A stretch of DNA of 64,000 nucleotides from contig NIVC01001121.1 of assembly GCA_002269645.1 (NCBI GenBank), positions 124,001 to 188,000 on the forward strand, read 5' to 3'. A program made the position numbers and the translations under genes. The DNA is from Macrostomum lignano. Lineage: Eukaryota. The notes under the pieces are model-generated. The model was given only the letters and a program-made list of their open reading frames with translations. It made no database searches and was not told the origin of the DNA. Of this stretch, positions 7,001 through 28,000 are shown piece after piece. Each line of letters starts with the position of its first letter. Position 1 is the first letter of the stretch.

Positions 7001-10000
7001 ATAGGGCAGCCTGAAGACCAGCATCGTACTGACTGCTTCCGGTGGCGTAATAATCCAAACGGCTGGTTTCGATGCAGCTGGTGAAGTTCTGCAGCAGTTT
7101 TAGCATTTGATTTGTGCTTGAAGAGTTCGAAGTAGTATTGCCAGTGAAGACTTTCAACAGGTTTTGCATGGATGTCAGGTTGGTTGACGACCCGAGGATA
7201 CCAGAGAAAGCAGAGCTGGCCAGGGGATTGGACAGTAGATTCGCCAAGACACTGGCGGCTGAGGTTCCCGTAGCCGTTGGCAGCAAGCCAGCCAGACTGT
7301 TAGCCAGCTCCTGCAGGTTAAACAGCTTGGTGAACTGTTCCTGGGCTCCGCTCATCAAGCTTCGCGTCGTGTTCGTGTCAGGCGTTACAATCACGCGTCC
7401 TCGAATGATTGGCTTAACGTAGGTCCAGCCGACCCTTCCGGCTGTTGATTTCTGAGTCAGGTCGTAGAGATTTCGGCAGAACTCATTGCTAGCCAGCTGG
7501 CCGAGCTCGTAGGTGTAAGTAGTTGAGTGAGTGGAGCGTCTCTTGCGTCGGCGTCCCGAATCAGTACTGCCGGGGCTAAGGCTGATGCCATAGACGCTGG
7601 TGAAGTTGAACTTTCCGCTGGTCCCGCACACCGCCTGGCTGATACCTTCGAGTCCGTTTGGAGCTGCAATTTGTTTGAGAGCAGCAAACTTAGCTTGCGG
7701 ATGTGTAGTACCTTACAGTTACAGGTATACGTAGTATGTATGTGGTATGATAATGGCCAAATGATGACGATTCAGTGCCATTCAATGCCTCTTTTGACGC
7801 CATTACAGTACATGTACGGTATGGGACAATCCGCATAACAGATAGCATACATTATTAGTTCCTAAATAATTTGGTTCCGTCTAAGGCCCAACAAGCTGAG
7901 ATCTCTACCGTTTCAAGCTTCCTACTCGCTTCTAATACACTAGAACCATGTAAAAGCAACGGATTTCACTCACAGCCCATATCGCTGGAGCCTGGATTGA
8001 AACTTGCAACAACACCGACCAGCTCCTGCAGCACATTGAAGGCGTTCTGCAACGCGTTGCCGGTGTCTTGAACTGCTTGAATGGCATCTTTCAGGTCGAC
8101 GAGGGTCACTCCGGAGCTGTTGAGTAAGCTGTCGATGGCCTGCTGGCCAAACTGTTTCATGAAAAACCGGCCAAAGTTGCCCATCTTGAGAATTGTTTCC
8201 GTGATGTTTTCCACGTCTCGAAGTGTCCTGTTAACGCAGAGCTGCTCGACCAGGCTGGAGACATTGTAGGTCACGTTCGAGAAGTCAATGAGGCTCTGTA
8301 GCTTGCCAGCGTTGCACAGAGCTTCGGGGAGGCTGAGTTTCAGCGAGAAGTTGAAAAGCTGAAATTTCAAAATGTAAATATCAGTTTACCTTTGAGTGGA
8401 AACTTTTAGGCTTTAAAATACGAGCTACGAACTAAACTCGGCCAATCTAACCTGTTCGTGGACAGATACGAGCTCAAGATGAGATCGGAAACTTCGGCAG
8501 GAAATCCCTGGCGCTGTAGATACTGCCTGACTGCACTTGGATCGTCCACAAAGTCTTTGACTTGCACTGTAAAGTATTAGAAGCGAGGAAGCCTCCTTGC
8601 ATTGTATATGACATCTCATCTAATGATTTAATGATTGGAGAATCTACACGCCCATATTTGCTTACATTTTATTGGGAACAAAGGCTTAGCAAAGTCGAAA
8701 AGGCGCAGCGACTTGAAGAACAAGGTGAGATCCGACATTAAGCTCGCCCAGGCAGGGTCGGTGGACAATCCTTGCAAATCTTTTACCAGCGAATAGCCTC
8801 TGAAATAATGCAGATTGACAAGAAAATATGTTAGTGGTGATTCAATGATGCTGGGGTACTTTTTCAATTATCAATATGAAGGGGACTTCTGAACACGTGC
8901 GCGCACACGGATTTGTACACTCGTTTTCAAAGGATGTACAACGACCCTGATTTTCTAATCCTCATGTATTTACACTCTCTGGGCCTTGAGGGTTGGCCCT
9001 TTTTGTCAAATTAAGAGTCTCAAATTAAGGTGGGAAAGCACGGAACTCAACACACCGAGGTAGGAGCCTATAGCCTCAGGGGGCTAAGGGCTGGATCCCC
9101 CAATGGGCTGGCAAAATTATTTTAGCAGTTGTTTCCTTGTTCCTCCTGGTTCTGGCGCCCCTTGATGCAGGCAAATCCACGCTGGTGGCTCAGGATGGCG
9201 TCACAACAATAAAAAAGCTGTCTCCAAGGGGAGGATAATTCTACGGCTGGGGTATTTTATCAAATGAGCTCACATTTTCTGAAGCTGCTCTCCCGGGAAG
9301 CTTCTGATGAGCGACAGAATAACCGACTCGTACTCGGACATTCGTCGAATATCAAAATTGCTGAGCAGCTCGCGGATGCTTGCAGCTGGTTGAGCTGCTC
9401 CAACAGGTTGTTGAGATTAGTCAGCGCACGGATCCATCCGCTTAGGTCCAGCCCGCCAAAGTTCGGAGCGGTGGCGCCGCGAATCAGTAGAAGCATTCTC
9501 TGCCTGTCAGCTGGCGACGCGGCCATCTGTTGACAGATGACTCTGGACACTGCACCCATGTCAACGGAGAGCACGGCCGGGAAGCTGATGATCTGGCTGA
9601 TCTTAGTCGGGCTACACAAAGCGTTGTAGAGATCGGCGTCCGACATTGAGGCGATGAAGCTCTGTTGTGTTTTAGAGCGATTTGTTTGCTTAATTCAAAC
9701 TGCACGGTGATGGCAACTGTTCGGTTGACACCTGACACTCAGACGCACTCATGCTTCAAAGGCGTGAATCGCAACTTCCGAATGTGAGACATCGGTCCCA
9801 CAACCAGCTGCTGAAGGCAATTCTCACAATACCGCTGAACTCCTGCACACATACAAGAGCGTCAATACCGTACGCAGGCACGCGCTCATGCATGCACTCA
9901 CACCCTGACTTTCTAATCATTAGGCATGTAATCTCTCTGTGCCTTTGGAACTGGCCCTCATTGGTTTGGATCGCACGACAACCAATGGCCGCCCACGAAA

Positions 10001-25000: not shown

Positions 25001-28000
25001 GTTTGGTTATTAAATCTGCCTCTCCACCCCCTCTCAGTCCTTGAGAATCTGCCTCTCCGCCCCCTCTCAGTCCTTGAGAATCTGCCTCTCCGCCCCCTCT
25101 CAGTCCTTGAGAATCTGCCTCTCCACCCCCTCTCAGTCCTTGAGAATCTGCCTCTCCACCCCCTCTCAGTCCTTGAGAATCTGCCTCTCCGCTCCCCTCT
25201 CAGTCCTTGAGAATCTGCCTCTCCGCCTCCCTCTCAGTCCTTGAGAATCTGCCTCTCCGCCTCCCTCTCAGTCCTTGAGAATCTGCCTCTCCGCCTCCCT
25301 CTCAGTCCTTGAGAATCTGCCTCTCCGCCTCCCTCTCAGTCCTTGAGAATCTGCCTCTCCGCCTCCCTCTCAGTCCTTGAGAATCTGCCTCTCCGCCTCC
25401 CTCTCAGTCCTTGAGAATCTGCCTCTCCGCCTCCCTCTCAGTCCTTAAGAATCTGCCTCTCCGCTCCATCCCAGAGCGCAAATTTCTTACCTCATTCAGA
25501 AACTGCGTCAGATTCAACGCCGTCATGGCAGTCGAATTCGAGCAGGCAAACTGCTGCACCTGAATCAGCAGACGGTGATTCGCGGCTGGCGGATTGAACA
25601 GATTTTTTAGTTCCATTGCGCCGCTGCAGAACTGGCCCACCACAGCTGCGGAAAGAGTCTGGTCCATCTGGAGCAGCTGCAGCAGCTGCAGACAAAAATT
25701 GGGAAAGTTTTGTAAGTTTGAGCTTATTCTCATCAAGACGCTAAGAAACTTAACTAAACTGACAGACAGACAGACAGACAGACAGACAGACACTAAGACA
25801 GACAGACAGACAGACAGACACTAAGACAGACAGACAGACAGACAGACACTAAGACAGACAGACACTAAGACAGACACTAAGACAGACAGACAGACAGACA
25901 GACAGACACTAAGACAGACAGACAGACAGACAGACACTAAGACAGACACTAAGACAGACAGACAGACAGACAGACAGACACTAAGACAGACAGACAGACA
26001 GACAGACACTAAGACAGACAGACACTAAGACAGACAGACAGACAGACAGACAGACAGACAGACAGACAGACAGACAGACAGACAGACAGACAGACAGACA
26101 GACAGACAGACAGACAGACAGACAGACAGACAGACAGACAGACAGACAGACAGACAGACAGACAGACAGACAGACAGACAGACAGACAGACAGACAGACA
26201 GACAGACAGACAGACAGACAGACAGACAGACAGACAGACGGACAGACAGACAGACATGCAGACAGACAGAACTCTCACCCCTCCGAGGGTCACAGGCGTG
26301 GCCTGCAGATCGGACATGGAGACACCCCGACTCAGCAGTTGTTTGACAATTTCCGGAGGCAGCATCTTGTCCAGAGTTGAGTTGAGCACTAAAATTGATT
26401 TAGAGGTCTTAATTAATATCTAGAAGAGATATTTTGTCTGACAGGTCAATGGAAAAGTTCTCACTCAAAGACTGCAGCTGCACCAGGGTGCCAAGAATCC
26501 GCTGCCCGCTGCCCATGAACTTCAGGGCCATGTCGAACTGCGCCTTGCTAGCTGGATCGTTGCTAACCAGAGCGGAAATCAGCTGCACCACCTGCTCAGC
26601 TGTCTGCGTCAGGTAGGCAGCGTTGGACAGCAACCCAGGTGCGCTGAGCAGCTTCTGGAGCTGCTGAACCAGCGCCACGGCCCAGTTGCTCACGGCAACC
26701 CTGTCGAGACCTCGCAGGATTTCGAACTGGGGCAGCAGGCGCAGCAGAGTCTGCAGGTCGCCAATGGCCAGGTTGACATTGTAGTTGTAGGTGAACTCGG
26801 CTACCTGCTTGAACAGGCCGAGCGCTTTGCCGATGTTAAACTGGCTAAACAGAAAGTCGCTGAAGTTGCTGGCTCTGAACGAGTTCACCGAGCACAGCGC
26901 GTTCGAGATCTGGGCAGCTACAGTCGAGTTCTTGTCACCCTCGTAGTTGATGGAGATGTACTGCACCAGGAGGCTGGGATCGCAAGCAATATCCGTGATG
27001 CTCTTTCCGCCGAATGCCGAAATTAGCGACGTCAAGTTCAAACGGCCCTTCATCAGGGCGGTGGCCGCTTCAGGCGTGAGGAGCCGAGTTTCTTCGCTTA
27101 GGAATTCGATCACGAGAGTCTCATTGTAGAACAGACTGCCGATGGTCATGCTGAGCGAGTCTGCGGGATTTGTGCAGAGTTGGTTCAGCCCGTTCTTGTC
27201 TGTCCCCATCAATCTGTTGACTCTTGTCGATCCGTGCGTATCGGTCGCCCAACTCATCAATTATTAAAAAAAGCATTTTTTGAGGAGGGGTTTGTTCAAA
27301 TCAACTCATCAGGCTAAGAAGACTATAAAATTGCAATGCGCAACAGAAAACAAGTGGAAACACAATTGGAATTCAGCAATCCATGGCTGCTCTTCCTCTC
27401 TCTCCCCTCTTCCCTTCTTCCCCTTTCCTCCCCCAACTCACCCAGCAAGCTGGACAGATTATTCGCCGCTGCCGAATTTCCCAGCTTTATGATGGCTTTG
27501 GTGACTTCTGGCAGCTTCTTCAAGCTGGCCATCTTGGTGTCGTTAATCAGTATCGGCGTTAGCGCCTTGTCGAGCCGTTTGAACCGGCCGCGAGCGATGG
27601 CCTCGTTCGGCGTCTCCGTGTAATTGGGCGGCAGGCACTGGTTGTCCAGGTTGCAGCCGAAGGACTGCATGAAGCTCAGCGTGCCTTCCGACGGCATGTT
27701 GACACCTCGGTACTGGCCTGTCGATGGTGAGTAGTGGGGCAACCTCCTTTTAGTTTGTTCGGCCCTAAAAGGCCCAAATTTTATCGAAAGCATTGAGGCT
27801 TTTTTTCACTTACACGGAGCCAGAGACTCAGGCGGCGACACATGCCGCACAACCACCACCGACGAGATGATGGCCACGGGCAGTAGAACTTGCGTCACTG
27901 ACAGGGCCTGGGAATTTTTGGATTTTTTTATAAAATAAGGTTTAACAAACAAAACAGTATTTTAAAGCAGACTCACCGCGACGCTGAGGCCTTGAATAAT

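Follow-up and report, generated by a model that had tools for sequence, protein, structure and literature searches.

The locus described here raises the question of what a long series of recurring cysteine loops represents within the ectodomain of a transporter, whether the loops are true repeats, and what such a structure might do. The window analyzed, a 64,000-nucleotide stretch of the Macrostomum lignano genome (GenBank assembly GCA_002269645.1, contig NIVC01001121.1, positions 124,001 to 188,000), carries an ABCA full-transporter gene on its minus strand, from about 28.0 to 2.2 kb, and the extreme C-terminus of the gene may extend to about 1.9 kb. Judging from sequence, the loop-bearing region is the first ectodomain (ECD1) of a giant ABCA lipid transporter.

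Along the minus strand, the domain order is TM1 and the ECD1 start (near 28.0–27.4 kb), the ECD1 array, TMD1, NBD1, ECD2, TMD2, and NBD2. Two M. lignano models, P0001 and P0121, cover the exons (90–100% identity in most matched segments), with the annotated model P0121 mapping to 28042–7476; our exon model derives from an in-house gene-finding program that drew on database models, not on cDNA. The ABCA identity proposed in the first-pass annotation was borne out by Pfam and PDB matches. The Pfam domains ABC2_membrane_3 and ABC_tran were found in exons 7712–5796, 5506–3944, and 3856–2222, the first of which matched ABCA1 (E 6e-55; phmmer aligned exon residues 75–639 with ABCA1 351–943). This alignment begins at NEFCRNLY (7487–7458), and the motif AVCG (7643–7608) contains a cysteine that we take to be ABCA1 C309/ABCA4 C324, based on motif similarity. 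The Walker A motifs of NBD1 and NBD2 lie at 5828–5802 and 2863–2837, respectively. At the other end of ECD1, the three cysteines of P0121 (54, 75, and 81) correspond to C54, C75, and C81 of both ABCA1 and ABCA4.

Between these ends, ECD1 contains 17 Cys-x(20–40)-Cys loops, 160–245 residues apart (Table 1). All 16 loops listed previously were found on the minus strand where they had been placed, and a further loop was detected at 10.9 kb, so that the earlier count of 13–15 is corrected to 17. Five of these (23.3, 22.5, 12.3, 11.6, and 10.9 kb) are identified by position and Cys pair only, without profile support; the one at 22.5 kb (loop 4) is located inside a 294-aa exon (23111–22230).

Table 1. 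Features of the ABCA gene in the window, with the first Cys of each loop numbered as in P0121
Feature	Window position	Strand	Loop	First Cys in P0121	Basis
Whole ABCA gene	2222–28042	-			P0121 mapping; Pfam matches; ABCA1 match
ECD1 start with Cys triad (…APC)	27442–27830	-			ORFs; P0121 Cys 54, 75, 81
Putative array of 17 tandem lid-like modules	7969–27260	-	One Cys-x(20–40)-Cys per module		About 35 exons
Module 1	26733–27170	-	26984–26892 (x29)	205	Profile E 1e-13 on raw ORF; 54.4 bits in P0121
Module 2 core	25479–25730	-	25628–25542 (x27)	434	Profile E 5e-3 on ORF; 16.9 bits
Loop 3, degenerate module	23245–23352	-	x34	640	Cys pair at expected period; profile score within shuffles
Loop 4 (LMCNGS…LC), degenerate module	22452–22532	-	x25	870	Cys pair at expected period; profile score within shuffles
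Module 5, loop 5	21515–21595	-	x25	1074	13.1 bits; 12.1 bits with non-flatworm profile; both above all shuffles
Module 6 core	19664–19984	-	19825–19745 (x25)	1295	ORF E 7e-12; 62.6 bits
Module 7, single exon	18218–18832	-	18538–18458 (x25)	1540	Profile E 1e-21
Module 8 region	16660–18168	-	Complete, 17186–17109 (x24); partial second copy, 17905–17855	1739	Profile hits
Module 9 core	16439–16699	-	16525–16445 (KLCNGS…LC, x25)	1960	E 1e-10; 68.2 bits
Module 10	15008–15692	-	15410–15336 (x23)	2180	E 4e-17; 76 bits
Module 11	14224–14867	-	14492–14383, frameshift-broken	2399	Colinear profile hits, columns 2–84, 85–109, 122–185
Module 12	12965–13586	-	13321–13247 (x23)	2628	Colinear profile hits; 78 bits
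Three degenerate modules	10874–12307	-			Cys pairs at expected period; 3.7–7.7 bits, within shuffles
Loop 13		-	12307–12242 (x20)	2821	In degenerate module
Loop 14		-	11644–11519 (x40)	3013	In degenerate module
Loop 15		-	10972–10874 (x31)	3186	In degenerate module
Module 16	9377–10190	-	9616–9533 (x26)	3346	E 3e-10; 56.6 bits
Module 17, last of array	8035–8567	-	8316–8236 (x25)	3558	E 1e-10; 60.9 bits
Canonical C-terminal half of ECD1	6672–7663	-			phmmer alignment to ABCA1; closes with QMPTPC
TMD1, NBD1, ECD2, TMD2, NBD2	2222–6671	-			Pfam matches; Walker A motifs

Shuffle and profile tests confirmed that the loops are true repeats, beyond chance Cys spacing. Adjacent Cys pairs with 18–30 spacing occurred 14 times in the exon model versus 5.7 ± 2.2 times in shuffled sequence (n = 5000, P = 0.0002), with comparable results for four homologues. 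Loop-centered segments scored 13–86 bits against the module profile in 12 of 17 cases, compared with ≤9.2 bits for 340 shuffled segments, and 11 of the 17 remained above all shuffles when the profile held no flatworm sequence (module 2 had no significant score against that profile). A seed of three Physella modules likewise matched window modules (E 4e-9, for module 7, and 3e-3; best decoy 0.067), and the iterated profile gathered 316 modules and no reversed decoys (best decoy E 0.078). Modules are about 205–225 residues long, with cysteines fixed at profile columns 97 and 123. Sequon richness was also evident, as previously claimed (85 N-x-S/T sites versus 31.6 ± 5.1 in shuffles). Modules share only about 15–35% identity, which rules out recent copying. 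Recurrent intron sites lie at columns ~40 (phase 1, five modules), ~83 (phase 0, three), and ~147 (phase 0, three), and these shared positions and phases show tandem duplication of exon blocks to be how the array expanded.

In principle, such a pattern could arise by chance from the Cys spacing of low-complexity amphipathic sequence, or through repeats generated by mis-assembly. Direct BLASTP comparisons between most module pairs are not significant (module 6 does match the 15.4-kb module, at E 6e-5), and two local near-identical tandem duplications are present, with indels typical of long-read error. However, the modules pass both shuffled and reversed-sequence controls, are too diverged for recent copies, and have the same architecture in independent genomes of six phyla, leaving an artefact with almost no credibility. 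As an account of the entire array it is refuted, and it is conceivable only for the two local duplications.

As to their origin, the modules appear to derive from a known part of the ABCA fold. ABCA4 residues 101–300 form a distal ECD region that has been discussed as a lid (PMC8501128). Exactly one loop each was found at the equivalent place in ECD1 of ABCA4 (C205-x24-C230) and ABCA1 (C195-x19-C215), in agreement with the first-pass annotation, and its proposal of homology was supported: the module profile matched ABCA4 106–292 (E 3.5e-10), and nothing else in the PDB sequence set was significant. When restricted to 52 internal modules, without positional orthologues of the lid, the profile still matched ABCA4 128–262 (E 9e-7), within the published lid segment, and aligned both cysteines with C205 and C230 (best of 200 shuffles, 2.9 bits). 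No disulfide between these two cysteines is reported in PMC8501128. Like the modules, the lid of ABCA4 and ABCA1 is flanked by the Cys triad and the VCG cysteine; it is helical, spans about 200 residues, and has one Cys pair, and module 1 is its positional orthologue. The copy number differs, with one lid in ABCA1 and ABCA4, 17 in the window gene, and up to at least 27 elsewhere. In place of the single ~200-residue lid with one Cys-x(19–24)-Cys pair, the window gene thus very probably holds 17 tandem copies between canonical ABCA ECD1 ends.

The detected homology reaches ABCA4 but not ABCA1: the all-module profile retrieved no ABCA1 chain from the PDB sequence set at E up to 10, and unverified ABCA1 and ABCA12 sequences scored only 5–10 bits. 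Foldseek also aligned neither structural model with ABCA1 or ABCA4; the positive control, which includes the sequence-homologous first module, was likewise unmatched, so the comparison carries little weight in either direction. Such results might be expected if the modules were real repeats of a foreign helical domain inserted in ECD1 and unrelated to the lid. We consider this very improbable given the alignment of internal modules and their cysteines with ABCA4, and given the double standing of the first module, which runs colinear with ABCA4 (Ptychodera N-terminus versus ABCA4 1–261, E 2e-34) and clearly belongs to the repeat family as well (Ptychodera, E 1e-25).

Its distribution shows the array to be old. 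When the full set of 1.84 billion representative proteins was scanned, 83 reached E ≤ 1e-3, and the best of these contained as many as 26 matched segments; the same array was found in molluscs, arthropods, echinoderms, hemichordates, and an annelid. These giant proteins share with the window gene the order of Cys triad, module array, canonical ECD1 end, and transporter core, and their modules are about 205–230 residues long with one C-x(~24)-C pair each; the flatworm modules are more diverged, five of them being degenerate. Examples include the Bombus "lipid droplet defective" protein (4084 aa; 6 profile-detected modules, 10 Cys pairs), Antedon "ABCA1-like" (3932 aa; 9 modules), Apostichopus XP_071835863.1 (5326 aa), and Ptychodera XP_070556625.1 (P0006; 6292 aa, partial), in which at least 27 modules tile residues 103–6286 and Cys pairs recur at a ~225-residue period through most of the array. 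Nearly all such proteins carry the label "uncharacterized" or "hypothetical"; the giant ABCA of M. lignano appears in databases as ABCA12-, ABCA13-, or ABCA1-like, and names given to relatives include "ABCA12" for an M. lignano fragment (P0124) and "ABCA13" for Vespula squamosa P0097. No Pfam model for the repeat was found, and a literature search returned no paper describing it; the first-pass annotation likewise knew of no description.

No vertebrate protein was identified among 30 profile hits looked up. Vertebrate ABCA13 (5058 aa, ECD1 about 3,500 aa) and ABCA12 are, like the window gene, ABCA transporters whose first exoplasmic or N-terminal region is abnormally large (PMC7948424, PMC13161189). 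That of ABCA13 is described as having neither homology to known proteins nor well-conserved domains (PMC7948424), and much of the human region is reported to be one 4.8-kb exon (Prades et al. 2002, as cited in PMC7948424), compared with about 35 exons in the window gene. Putative orthology to vertebrate ABCA12/ABCA13 rests on database names and one published tree of other arthropod genes (PMC3724490).

Structure prediction suggests that each module is all-helical, as modeled by AlphaFold2 for module 7 (pLDDT 74.7). In a two-module model (pTM 0.40), the linkers were of low confidence and no rigid inter-module contact was predicted. Long arrays of all-helical repeats also characterize generic helical or disulfide-stapled repeat ectodomains (spectrin-like, designed). 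PDB sequence and Foldseek searches found no significant match to these, with weak sequence matches to designed helical repeat proteins, and the module is a much longer unit (about 220 residues, roughly 10 helices) with its own conserved Cys pair.

Each Cys pair is predicted to form a disulfide that would staple a hairpin, and the array would be heavily N-glycosylated and face the lumen or cell exterior. Because ABCA4 C75 and C324 are disulfide-bonded (PMC8501128) and the equivalent lid-flanking cysteines both appear conserved in the window gene, the 3,500-residue array may loop out and return to an anchor at the base of the ECD. Tentatively, its most likely role would be to extend the lid as a long and semi-flexible glycoprotein, with many amphipathic helical surfaces that receive, hold, or hand over lipids extruded by the membrane domains, or that place the pump in lipid-rich luminal or extracellular material. 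ABCA-family substrates are lipids, which also counts for the first-pass reading of the array as a single unbroken hydrophobic tunnel or reservoir that would extend the ABCA1/ABCA4 conduit serially, with lipids travelling through or in it far from the membrane. The Leu/Ala-rich, helical sequence of the array and the homology of its modules to the tunnel-capping ABCA4 segment agree with such a conduit. However, ECD1 and ECD2 build the tunnel of ABCA1 and ABCA4 jointly (PMC8501128), whereas multiplication is confined here to the ECD1 lid segment, ECD2 being single and ordinary in size. The canonical tunnel therefore cannot simply be lengthened, which makes a lengthened ABCA1 tunnel unlikely, and the absence of predicted rigid contact between modules further renders a continuous conduit improbable.

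It is also conceivable, if rather unlikely, that the array acts chiefly as a scaffold for sorting, anchoring, or protein docking, which would set the partners of the pump and its site in certain vesicles, granules, or matrix without direct lipid handling. [quoted passage not shown] The dense sequons and the range of module number between lineages (6 to at least 27 across spiralians, arthropods, echinoderms, and hemichordates), which is usual in spacer or adhesive repeats, fit a scaffold as well, but no known interaction domain was detected by Pfam.

The window copy itself bears local lesions. Module 8 sits in a 755-bp tandem duplication that is out of frame (97.4% identity by self-BLASTN, 19 gaps), and a second near-identical duplication, of 595 bp, lies at 24153–25344. 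The longer loop variant annotated earlier at 17.9 kb is present and lies in the 755-bp duplication. The frameshift said to split the 14.45-kb loop was located at about 14412–14415, and another occurs near 18.04 kb. A damaged paralogue is one possible reading of the window copy, and mis-assembly of the stretch is another. P0001 and P0121 have a single copy of the 755-bp unit, and in the paralogue model P0121 the loop of module 11 is intact (x27, 86 bits).

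The giant ABCA transporter is encoded by one multi-exon gene on the minus strand, for which Pfam searches place a pair each of ABC-2-type membrane and ABC ATPase domains on a single chain, as in ABCA full transporters (see table). The solved structures closest to exon 7712-5796 were ABCA1 (E 6e-55), ABCA4 (6e-48), ABCA7 (1e-46) and ABCA3 (7e-28), with the alignment to ABCA1 beginning at ABCA1 residue 351; ABCA12 and ABCA13 were absent from the PDB sequence set searched with this exon. The first exoplasmic domain (ECD1) of ABCA1 comprises ~600 residues. ECD1 of the window gene measures ~3,700-3,900 residues (3,665 up to the QMPTPC motif in the exon model), far exceeding the size in ABCA1 or ABCA4, as is characteristic of the ABCA12/ABCA13 clade. 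The support for affinity with this clade consists of source names and a published tree of other arthropod genes (PMC3724490). A homologous-protein search with the ECD1-end and TMD1 segment of the Antedon protein returned a single ABCA4 fragment.

A search with the concatenated ECD1 ORFs recovered the Macrostomum lignano fragment P0001, which agrees with the exons at 90-100% identity in most of the segments matched, together with distant insect relatives of ~4000 residues and a 2117-residue snail fragment. The M. lignano model PAA54280.1 (P0121, 3734 aa), an intact paralogue, is colinear with the window from 28042 to 7476; its Cys triad lies at residues 54, 75 and 81, its large ECD1 follows TM1, and its last residue is still inside ECD1. 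Several near-identical paralogous gene models occur in M. lignano, and at least eight overlapping models align to the window, their matched segments averaging 81-93% identity, which points, at the level of sequence, to several paralogous or allelic copies. The UniRef names of P0001 and two further models, P0007 and P0119, are misleading ("Ephrin_rec_like domain-containing," "ANK_REP_REGION domain-containing" and "KR domain-containing"), probably as a result of chimeric gene models.

Features of the window, with coordinates in window positions
Feature	Coordinates	Strand	Details
ABCA gene	~28.0 to 2.2 kb	minus	
Cys triad	27.8-27.4 kb		
"AVCG"	7643-7608		
Large 3' exons with ABC-2 membrane and ABC ATPase domains	7712-5796, 5506-3944, 3856-2222	minus	Pfam ABC2_membrane_3, ABC_tran
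Walker A motifs	5828-5802 and 2863-2837	minus	
Frame change in loop-11 exon (14383-14492)	~14412-14415	minus	P0121 reads straight through
755-bp-unit tandem duplication	16660-17412 vs 17409-18168		97.4% identity, 19 gaps; covers part of module 8
595-bp tandem duplication	24153-25344		98.3% identity; repeats small coding exon exactly (24206-24388 = 24801-24983)
33/34-bp minisatellite around the 595-bp duplication	24418-24733, 25013-25464		
Micro- and minisatellites in ABCA introns	10536-10742, 20380-20637, 21030-21211, 25761-26270		units 22-bp, 20/40-bp, (ATTATG)n, (GACA)n over 510 bp
Long minisatellite arrays outside the gene	~40.4-42.2, 42.7-43.9, 46.3-47.0, 50.2-52.4 kb		repetitive ORFs in all three frames
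Low G+C	36-40 kb		29-34%
MACPF/perforin-domain neighbour gene	52978-55421	minus	ORF 55421-54537, PF01823, E 3e-21
Next ORF	54081-52978		
Similar ORF fragments	~57.5-59.9 and 61.0-63.7 kb	minus	

A first-pass annotation, made from the sequence alone, had listed a series of Cys loops in ECD1 and proposed that they mark a serially multiplied lid module. All of the listed loops are present on the window, along with an extra one at 10.9 kb, and in P0121 the 17 pairs follow one another at 160-245 residues, counted from first cysteine to first cysteine. Direct BLASTP was nearly blind to the repeats, with comparison of window ORFs against one another giving only two weak ancient pairs, and the clue was supplied by snail, bee and moth homologues, in which nearly all ECD1 cysteines fall in C-x(21-27)-C pairs recurring every 205-230 residues. 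The last three snail units are mutually 26-31% identical over at least 200 residues (E 1e-17 to 1e-34), and a profile of these three units matched the window modules at 18.5 kb (E 4e-9) and 19.8 kb (E 3e-3; best decoy 0.067). A short loop-only HMM drifted and gathered a decoy, and was replaced by a full-length module profile. The iterated profile, extended with sequences from the database scan described below, gathered 316 modules and no reversed decoys; of the 17 M. lignano segments centred on a loop, 12 scored 13-86 bits against it (340 shuffled segments, ≤9.2 bits), and 11 still passed when the profile was restricted to hemichordate, mollusc, annelid, insect and unnamed sequences. The degenerate modules are those at 23.3, 22.5, 12.3, 11.6 and 10.9 kb, three of the five having unusual Cys spacing. 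On raw window ORFs, the profile matches form colinear pieces that track the exons. Adjacent Cys pairs at a spacing of 18-30 are also 2-4 times commoner than in shuffled sequences (window model and four homologues; P 0 to 0.002), and we rejected chance Cys spacing on the strength of this excess and of the 12 profile scores above all shuffled segments.

The two loop cysteines are the only invariant columns of the successive module alignments (A1-A3), and they fall without exception on columns 97 and 123 of the profile in the exon model. Introns are shared between modules at column ~40 (phase 1, five modules), column ~83 (phase 0, three modules) and column ~147 (phase 0, three modules), and such recurrent columns and phases are a signature of duplicated exon blocks. 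The many N-x-S/T sequons remarked on in the first-pass annotation amount to an almost threefold enrichment in the window ECD1. In the module profile, the second cysteine is followed by the consensus C-x-x-N-x-T-x-L-x-x-E, and a sequon falls within 7 residues past the loop in about one-quarter of the Cys pairs counted family-wide (e.g., Ptychodera 8/28, M. lignano 4/17).

An 11-module profile run over 1.84 billion representative proteins matched 83 at E ≤ 1e-3, the best of which contain 6-26 matched stretches each. Named matches belong to Platyhelminthes and Mollusca (Physella, Patella, Argopecten, Sinanodonta, Potamilus, Plakobranchus, Batillaria, Acanthosepion), Annelida (Owenia), Hemichordata (Ptychodera, Saccoglossus), Arthropoda (Bombus, Vespula, Loxostege, Limulus, Tachypleus, Dermacentor, Homarus) and Echinodermata (Antedon, Anneissia, Apostichopus, Diadema); no vertebrate or cnidarian protein was present among the 30 named profile matches. 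The same architecture in independent genomes led us to reject the view that mis-assembly had produced the array. In the Ptychodera protein (6292 residues, ending before the membrane domain), 27 modules tile residues 103-6286, and the Cys pairs keep an almost exact 225-residue period over most of the array. Nearly all of these array proteins are annotated as uncharacterized, with a few named ABCA1-, 2-, 7-, 12- or 13-like.

Several lines of evidence relate the module to the lid of ABCA4. In the cryo-EM description of ABCA4, residues 101-300 form the distal ECD, discussed as a lid, and the segment is bracketed by the C75-C324 disulfide (PMC8501128). The window array occupies the corresponding position, between the Cys triad and "AVCG," and the equivalents of C75 and C324 appear from the sequence to be conserved, in "FGCNLDNQC" and "AVCG," respectively. 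In the Ptychodera protein, residues 1-259 are colinear with human ABCA4 1-261 (E 2e-34), an alignment that places the first Cys pair over C205 and C230, and the repeat profile clearly recognises this first unit as one of the family (E 1e-25). The 54-module profile A3 gave one match per ABCA4 chain, to residues 106-292 (E 3.5e-10), and no other significant match in the PDB sequence set; the earlier 11-module profile A2 had found only designed helical proteins there, and ABCA4 came within reach only with the deeper profile. Since A3 included some first modules, it was rebuilt from 52 modules lying >320 residues from true N-termini. This internal-only profile still matched ABCA4 128-262 (31.8 bits, E 9e-7 at PDB size; best of 200 shuffles, 2.9 bits) with both cysteines aligned, and a foreign inserted repeat was rejected on this basis and on that of the first Ptychodera unit. 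The homology between profile and ABCA4 thus includes the Cys-x(19-24)-Cys pair, and the proposal of a single multiplied lid module gains sequence-level support. ABCA1 has a pair, C195-x19-C215, at the equivalent place and was undetected by the module profile, which fits the fact that the two human proteins are only 24% identical there (PMC8501128). Unverified human ABCA12 and ABCA1 sequences gave only marginal scores of 5-10 bits, which we treat as no more than a lead. The likeness to ABCA4 and ABCA1 includes the place of the lid module and its Cys pair, whereas the module is single there and repeated in an array here.

AlphaFold2 modelled the single-exon module at 18913-18173, with 54 aligned modules, as all-helical (pLDDT 74.7, pTM 0.63), and Foldseek against the PDB found no match for it below E = 3 and no ABCA. 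As a control, Ptychodera modules 1 and 2 were modelled as two confident helical cores with a low-confidence stretch between them (pLDDT 65.9, pTM 0.40), and no ABCA chain was matched in the PDB despite the sequence homology of module 1 to ABCA4; the Foldseek result is therefore uninformative rather than negative. Medium-quality models, the low information of helical bundles and the poor resolution of the lid in the maps deposited (PMC8501128) are likely reasons. Strict co-conservation of the two loop cysteines underlies their predicted disulfide; the disulfides that were resolved in ABCA4 do not include this pair (PMC8501128).

Judging from ABCA topology, the conserved paired cysteines and the sequon excess, the array would be exoplasmic, glycosylated and stapled by disulfides. 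If the C75 and C324 equivalents are indeed conserved, its ends would probably be pinned at the base of the ECD, making the array an out-and-back excursion. We favour a long extension of the lid that serves in lipid handling or pump positioning: it would offer many amphipathic helical surfaces to receive or hand over lipid or, alternatively, would place the pump within luminal or extracellular material rich in lipid. An extended, continuous lipid conduit, along the lines suggested in the first-pass annotation, has a low likelihood, because the canonical tunnel needs both ECDs, and ECD2 of the window gene is of ordinary size, so that there is no simple lengthening. A more serious rival to lid extension is a pure sorting or docking role for the array, given that localisation of mouse ABCA13 requires its N-terminal region (PMC7948424).

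ABCA13 is the largest ABC protein and has been linked to psychiatric disorders. Its huge N-terminal, exoplasmic region is required for function yet has been described as lacking recognisable or well-conserved domains (Nakato et al., PMC7948424), and a review of May 2026 describes the molecular structure of ABCA13 as largely unexplored (PMC13161189). We tentatively raise the idea, which we consider somewhat improbable, that the ~225-residue Cys-loop lid module is the ancestral block of the giant exoplasmic domain in all ABCA12/13-type transporters, including human ABCA13. If so, ~15 lid modules, since diverged, would make up the "domain-less" 3,500 residues of ABCA13 and form a long glycosylated extension for lipid handling. 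The invertebrate relatives follow one rule, a single ABCA4-type lid module present in anywhere from 6 to at least 27 copies, which yields a domain definition, a possible new profile family and natural construct boundaries, as well as a hypothesis for ABCA13 and ABCA12 and an evolutionary account of ECD growth through exon blocks duplicated in tandem. M. lignano and insects are amenable to RNAi, offering a tractable model for the effect of a multiplied lid on lipid export. The family and giant ABCA ectodomains are known; the repeat architecture and its lid origin appear undescribed. No Pfam family covers the module (none of eight scanned ECD1 array exons reached the gathering score), and the ABCA13 literature searched contained no description of a repeat architecture, in keeping with the first-pass annotation, which knew of none.

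The window copy of the gene also shows local irregularities. The frameshift reported earlier at 14.45 kb, in the loop-11 exon, is real in this gene copy and represents a sequencing or assembly indel or a decaying copy. A longer loop variant noted at 17.9 kb is likewise present, but it sits inside the 755-bp tandem duplication, which shifts the reading frame near 18040 and is lacking in P0001 and P0121, each with one copy only; the duplication is either a very recent event or a long-read assembly artefact. The 595-bp duplication is embedded in a minisatellite, and satellites in the ABCA introns generate long spurious ORFs (e.g., "SVCLSVCL…" and "NHNHNH…").

Outside the gene, the ORF following that of the MACPF domain looks like a Cys-rich continuation of the same protein with a transmembrane segment. 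The ORF fragments at ~57.5-59.9 and 61.0-63.7 kb resemble one another (e.g., "…RLALAIDRHQILVQRLHPICQLRAGTQDW" vs "…QRLAIAINRYQILIQSPQPIGELRLRTQIRP"), a likeness that suggests a repetitive element, possibly a mobile one, present here in two diverged copies.
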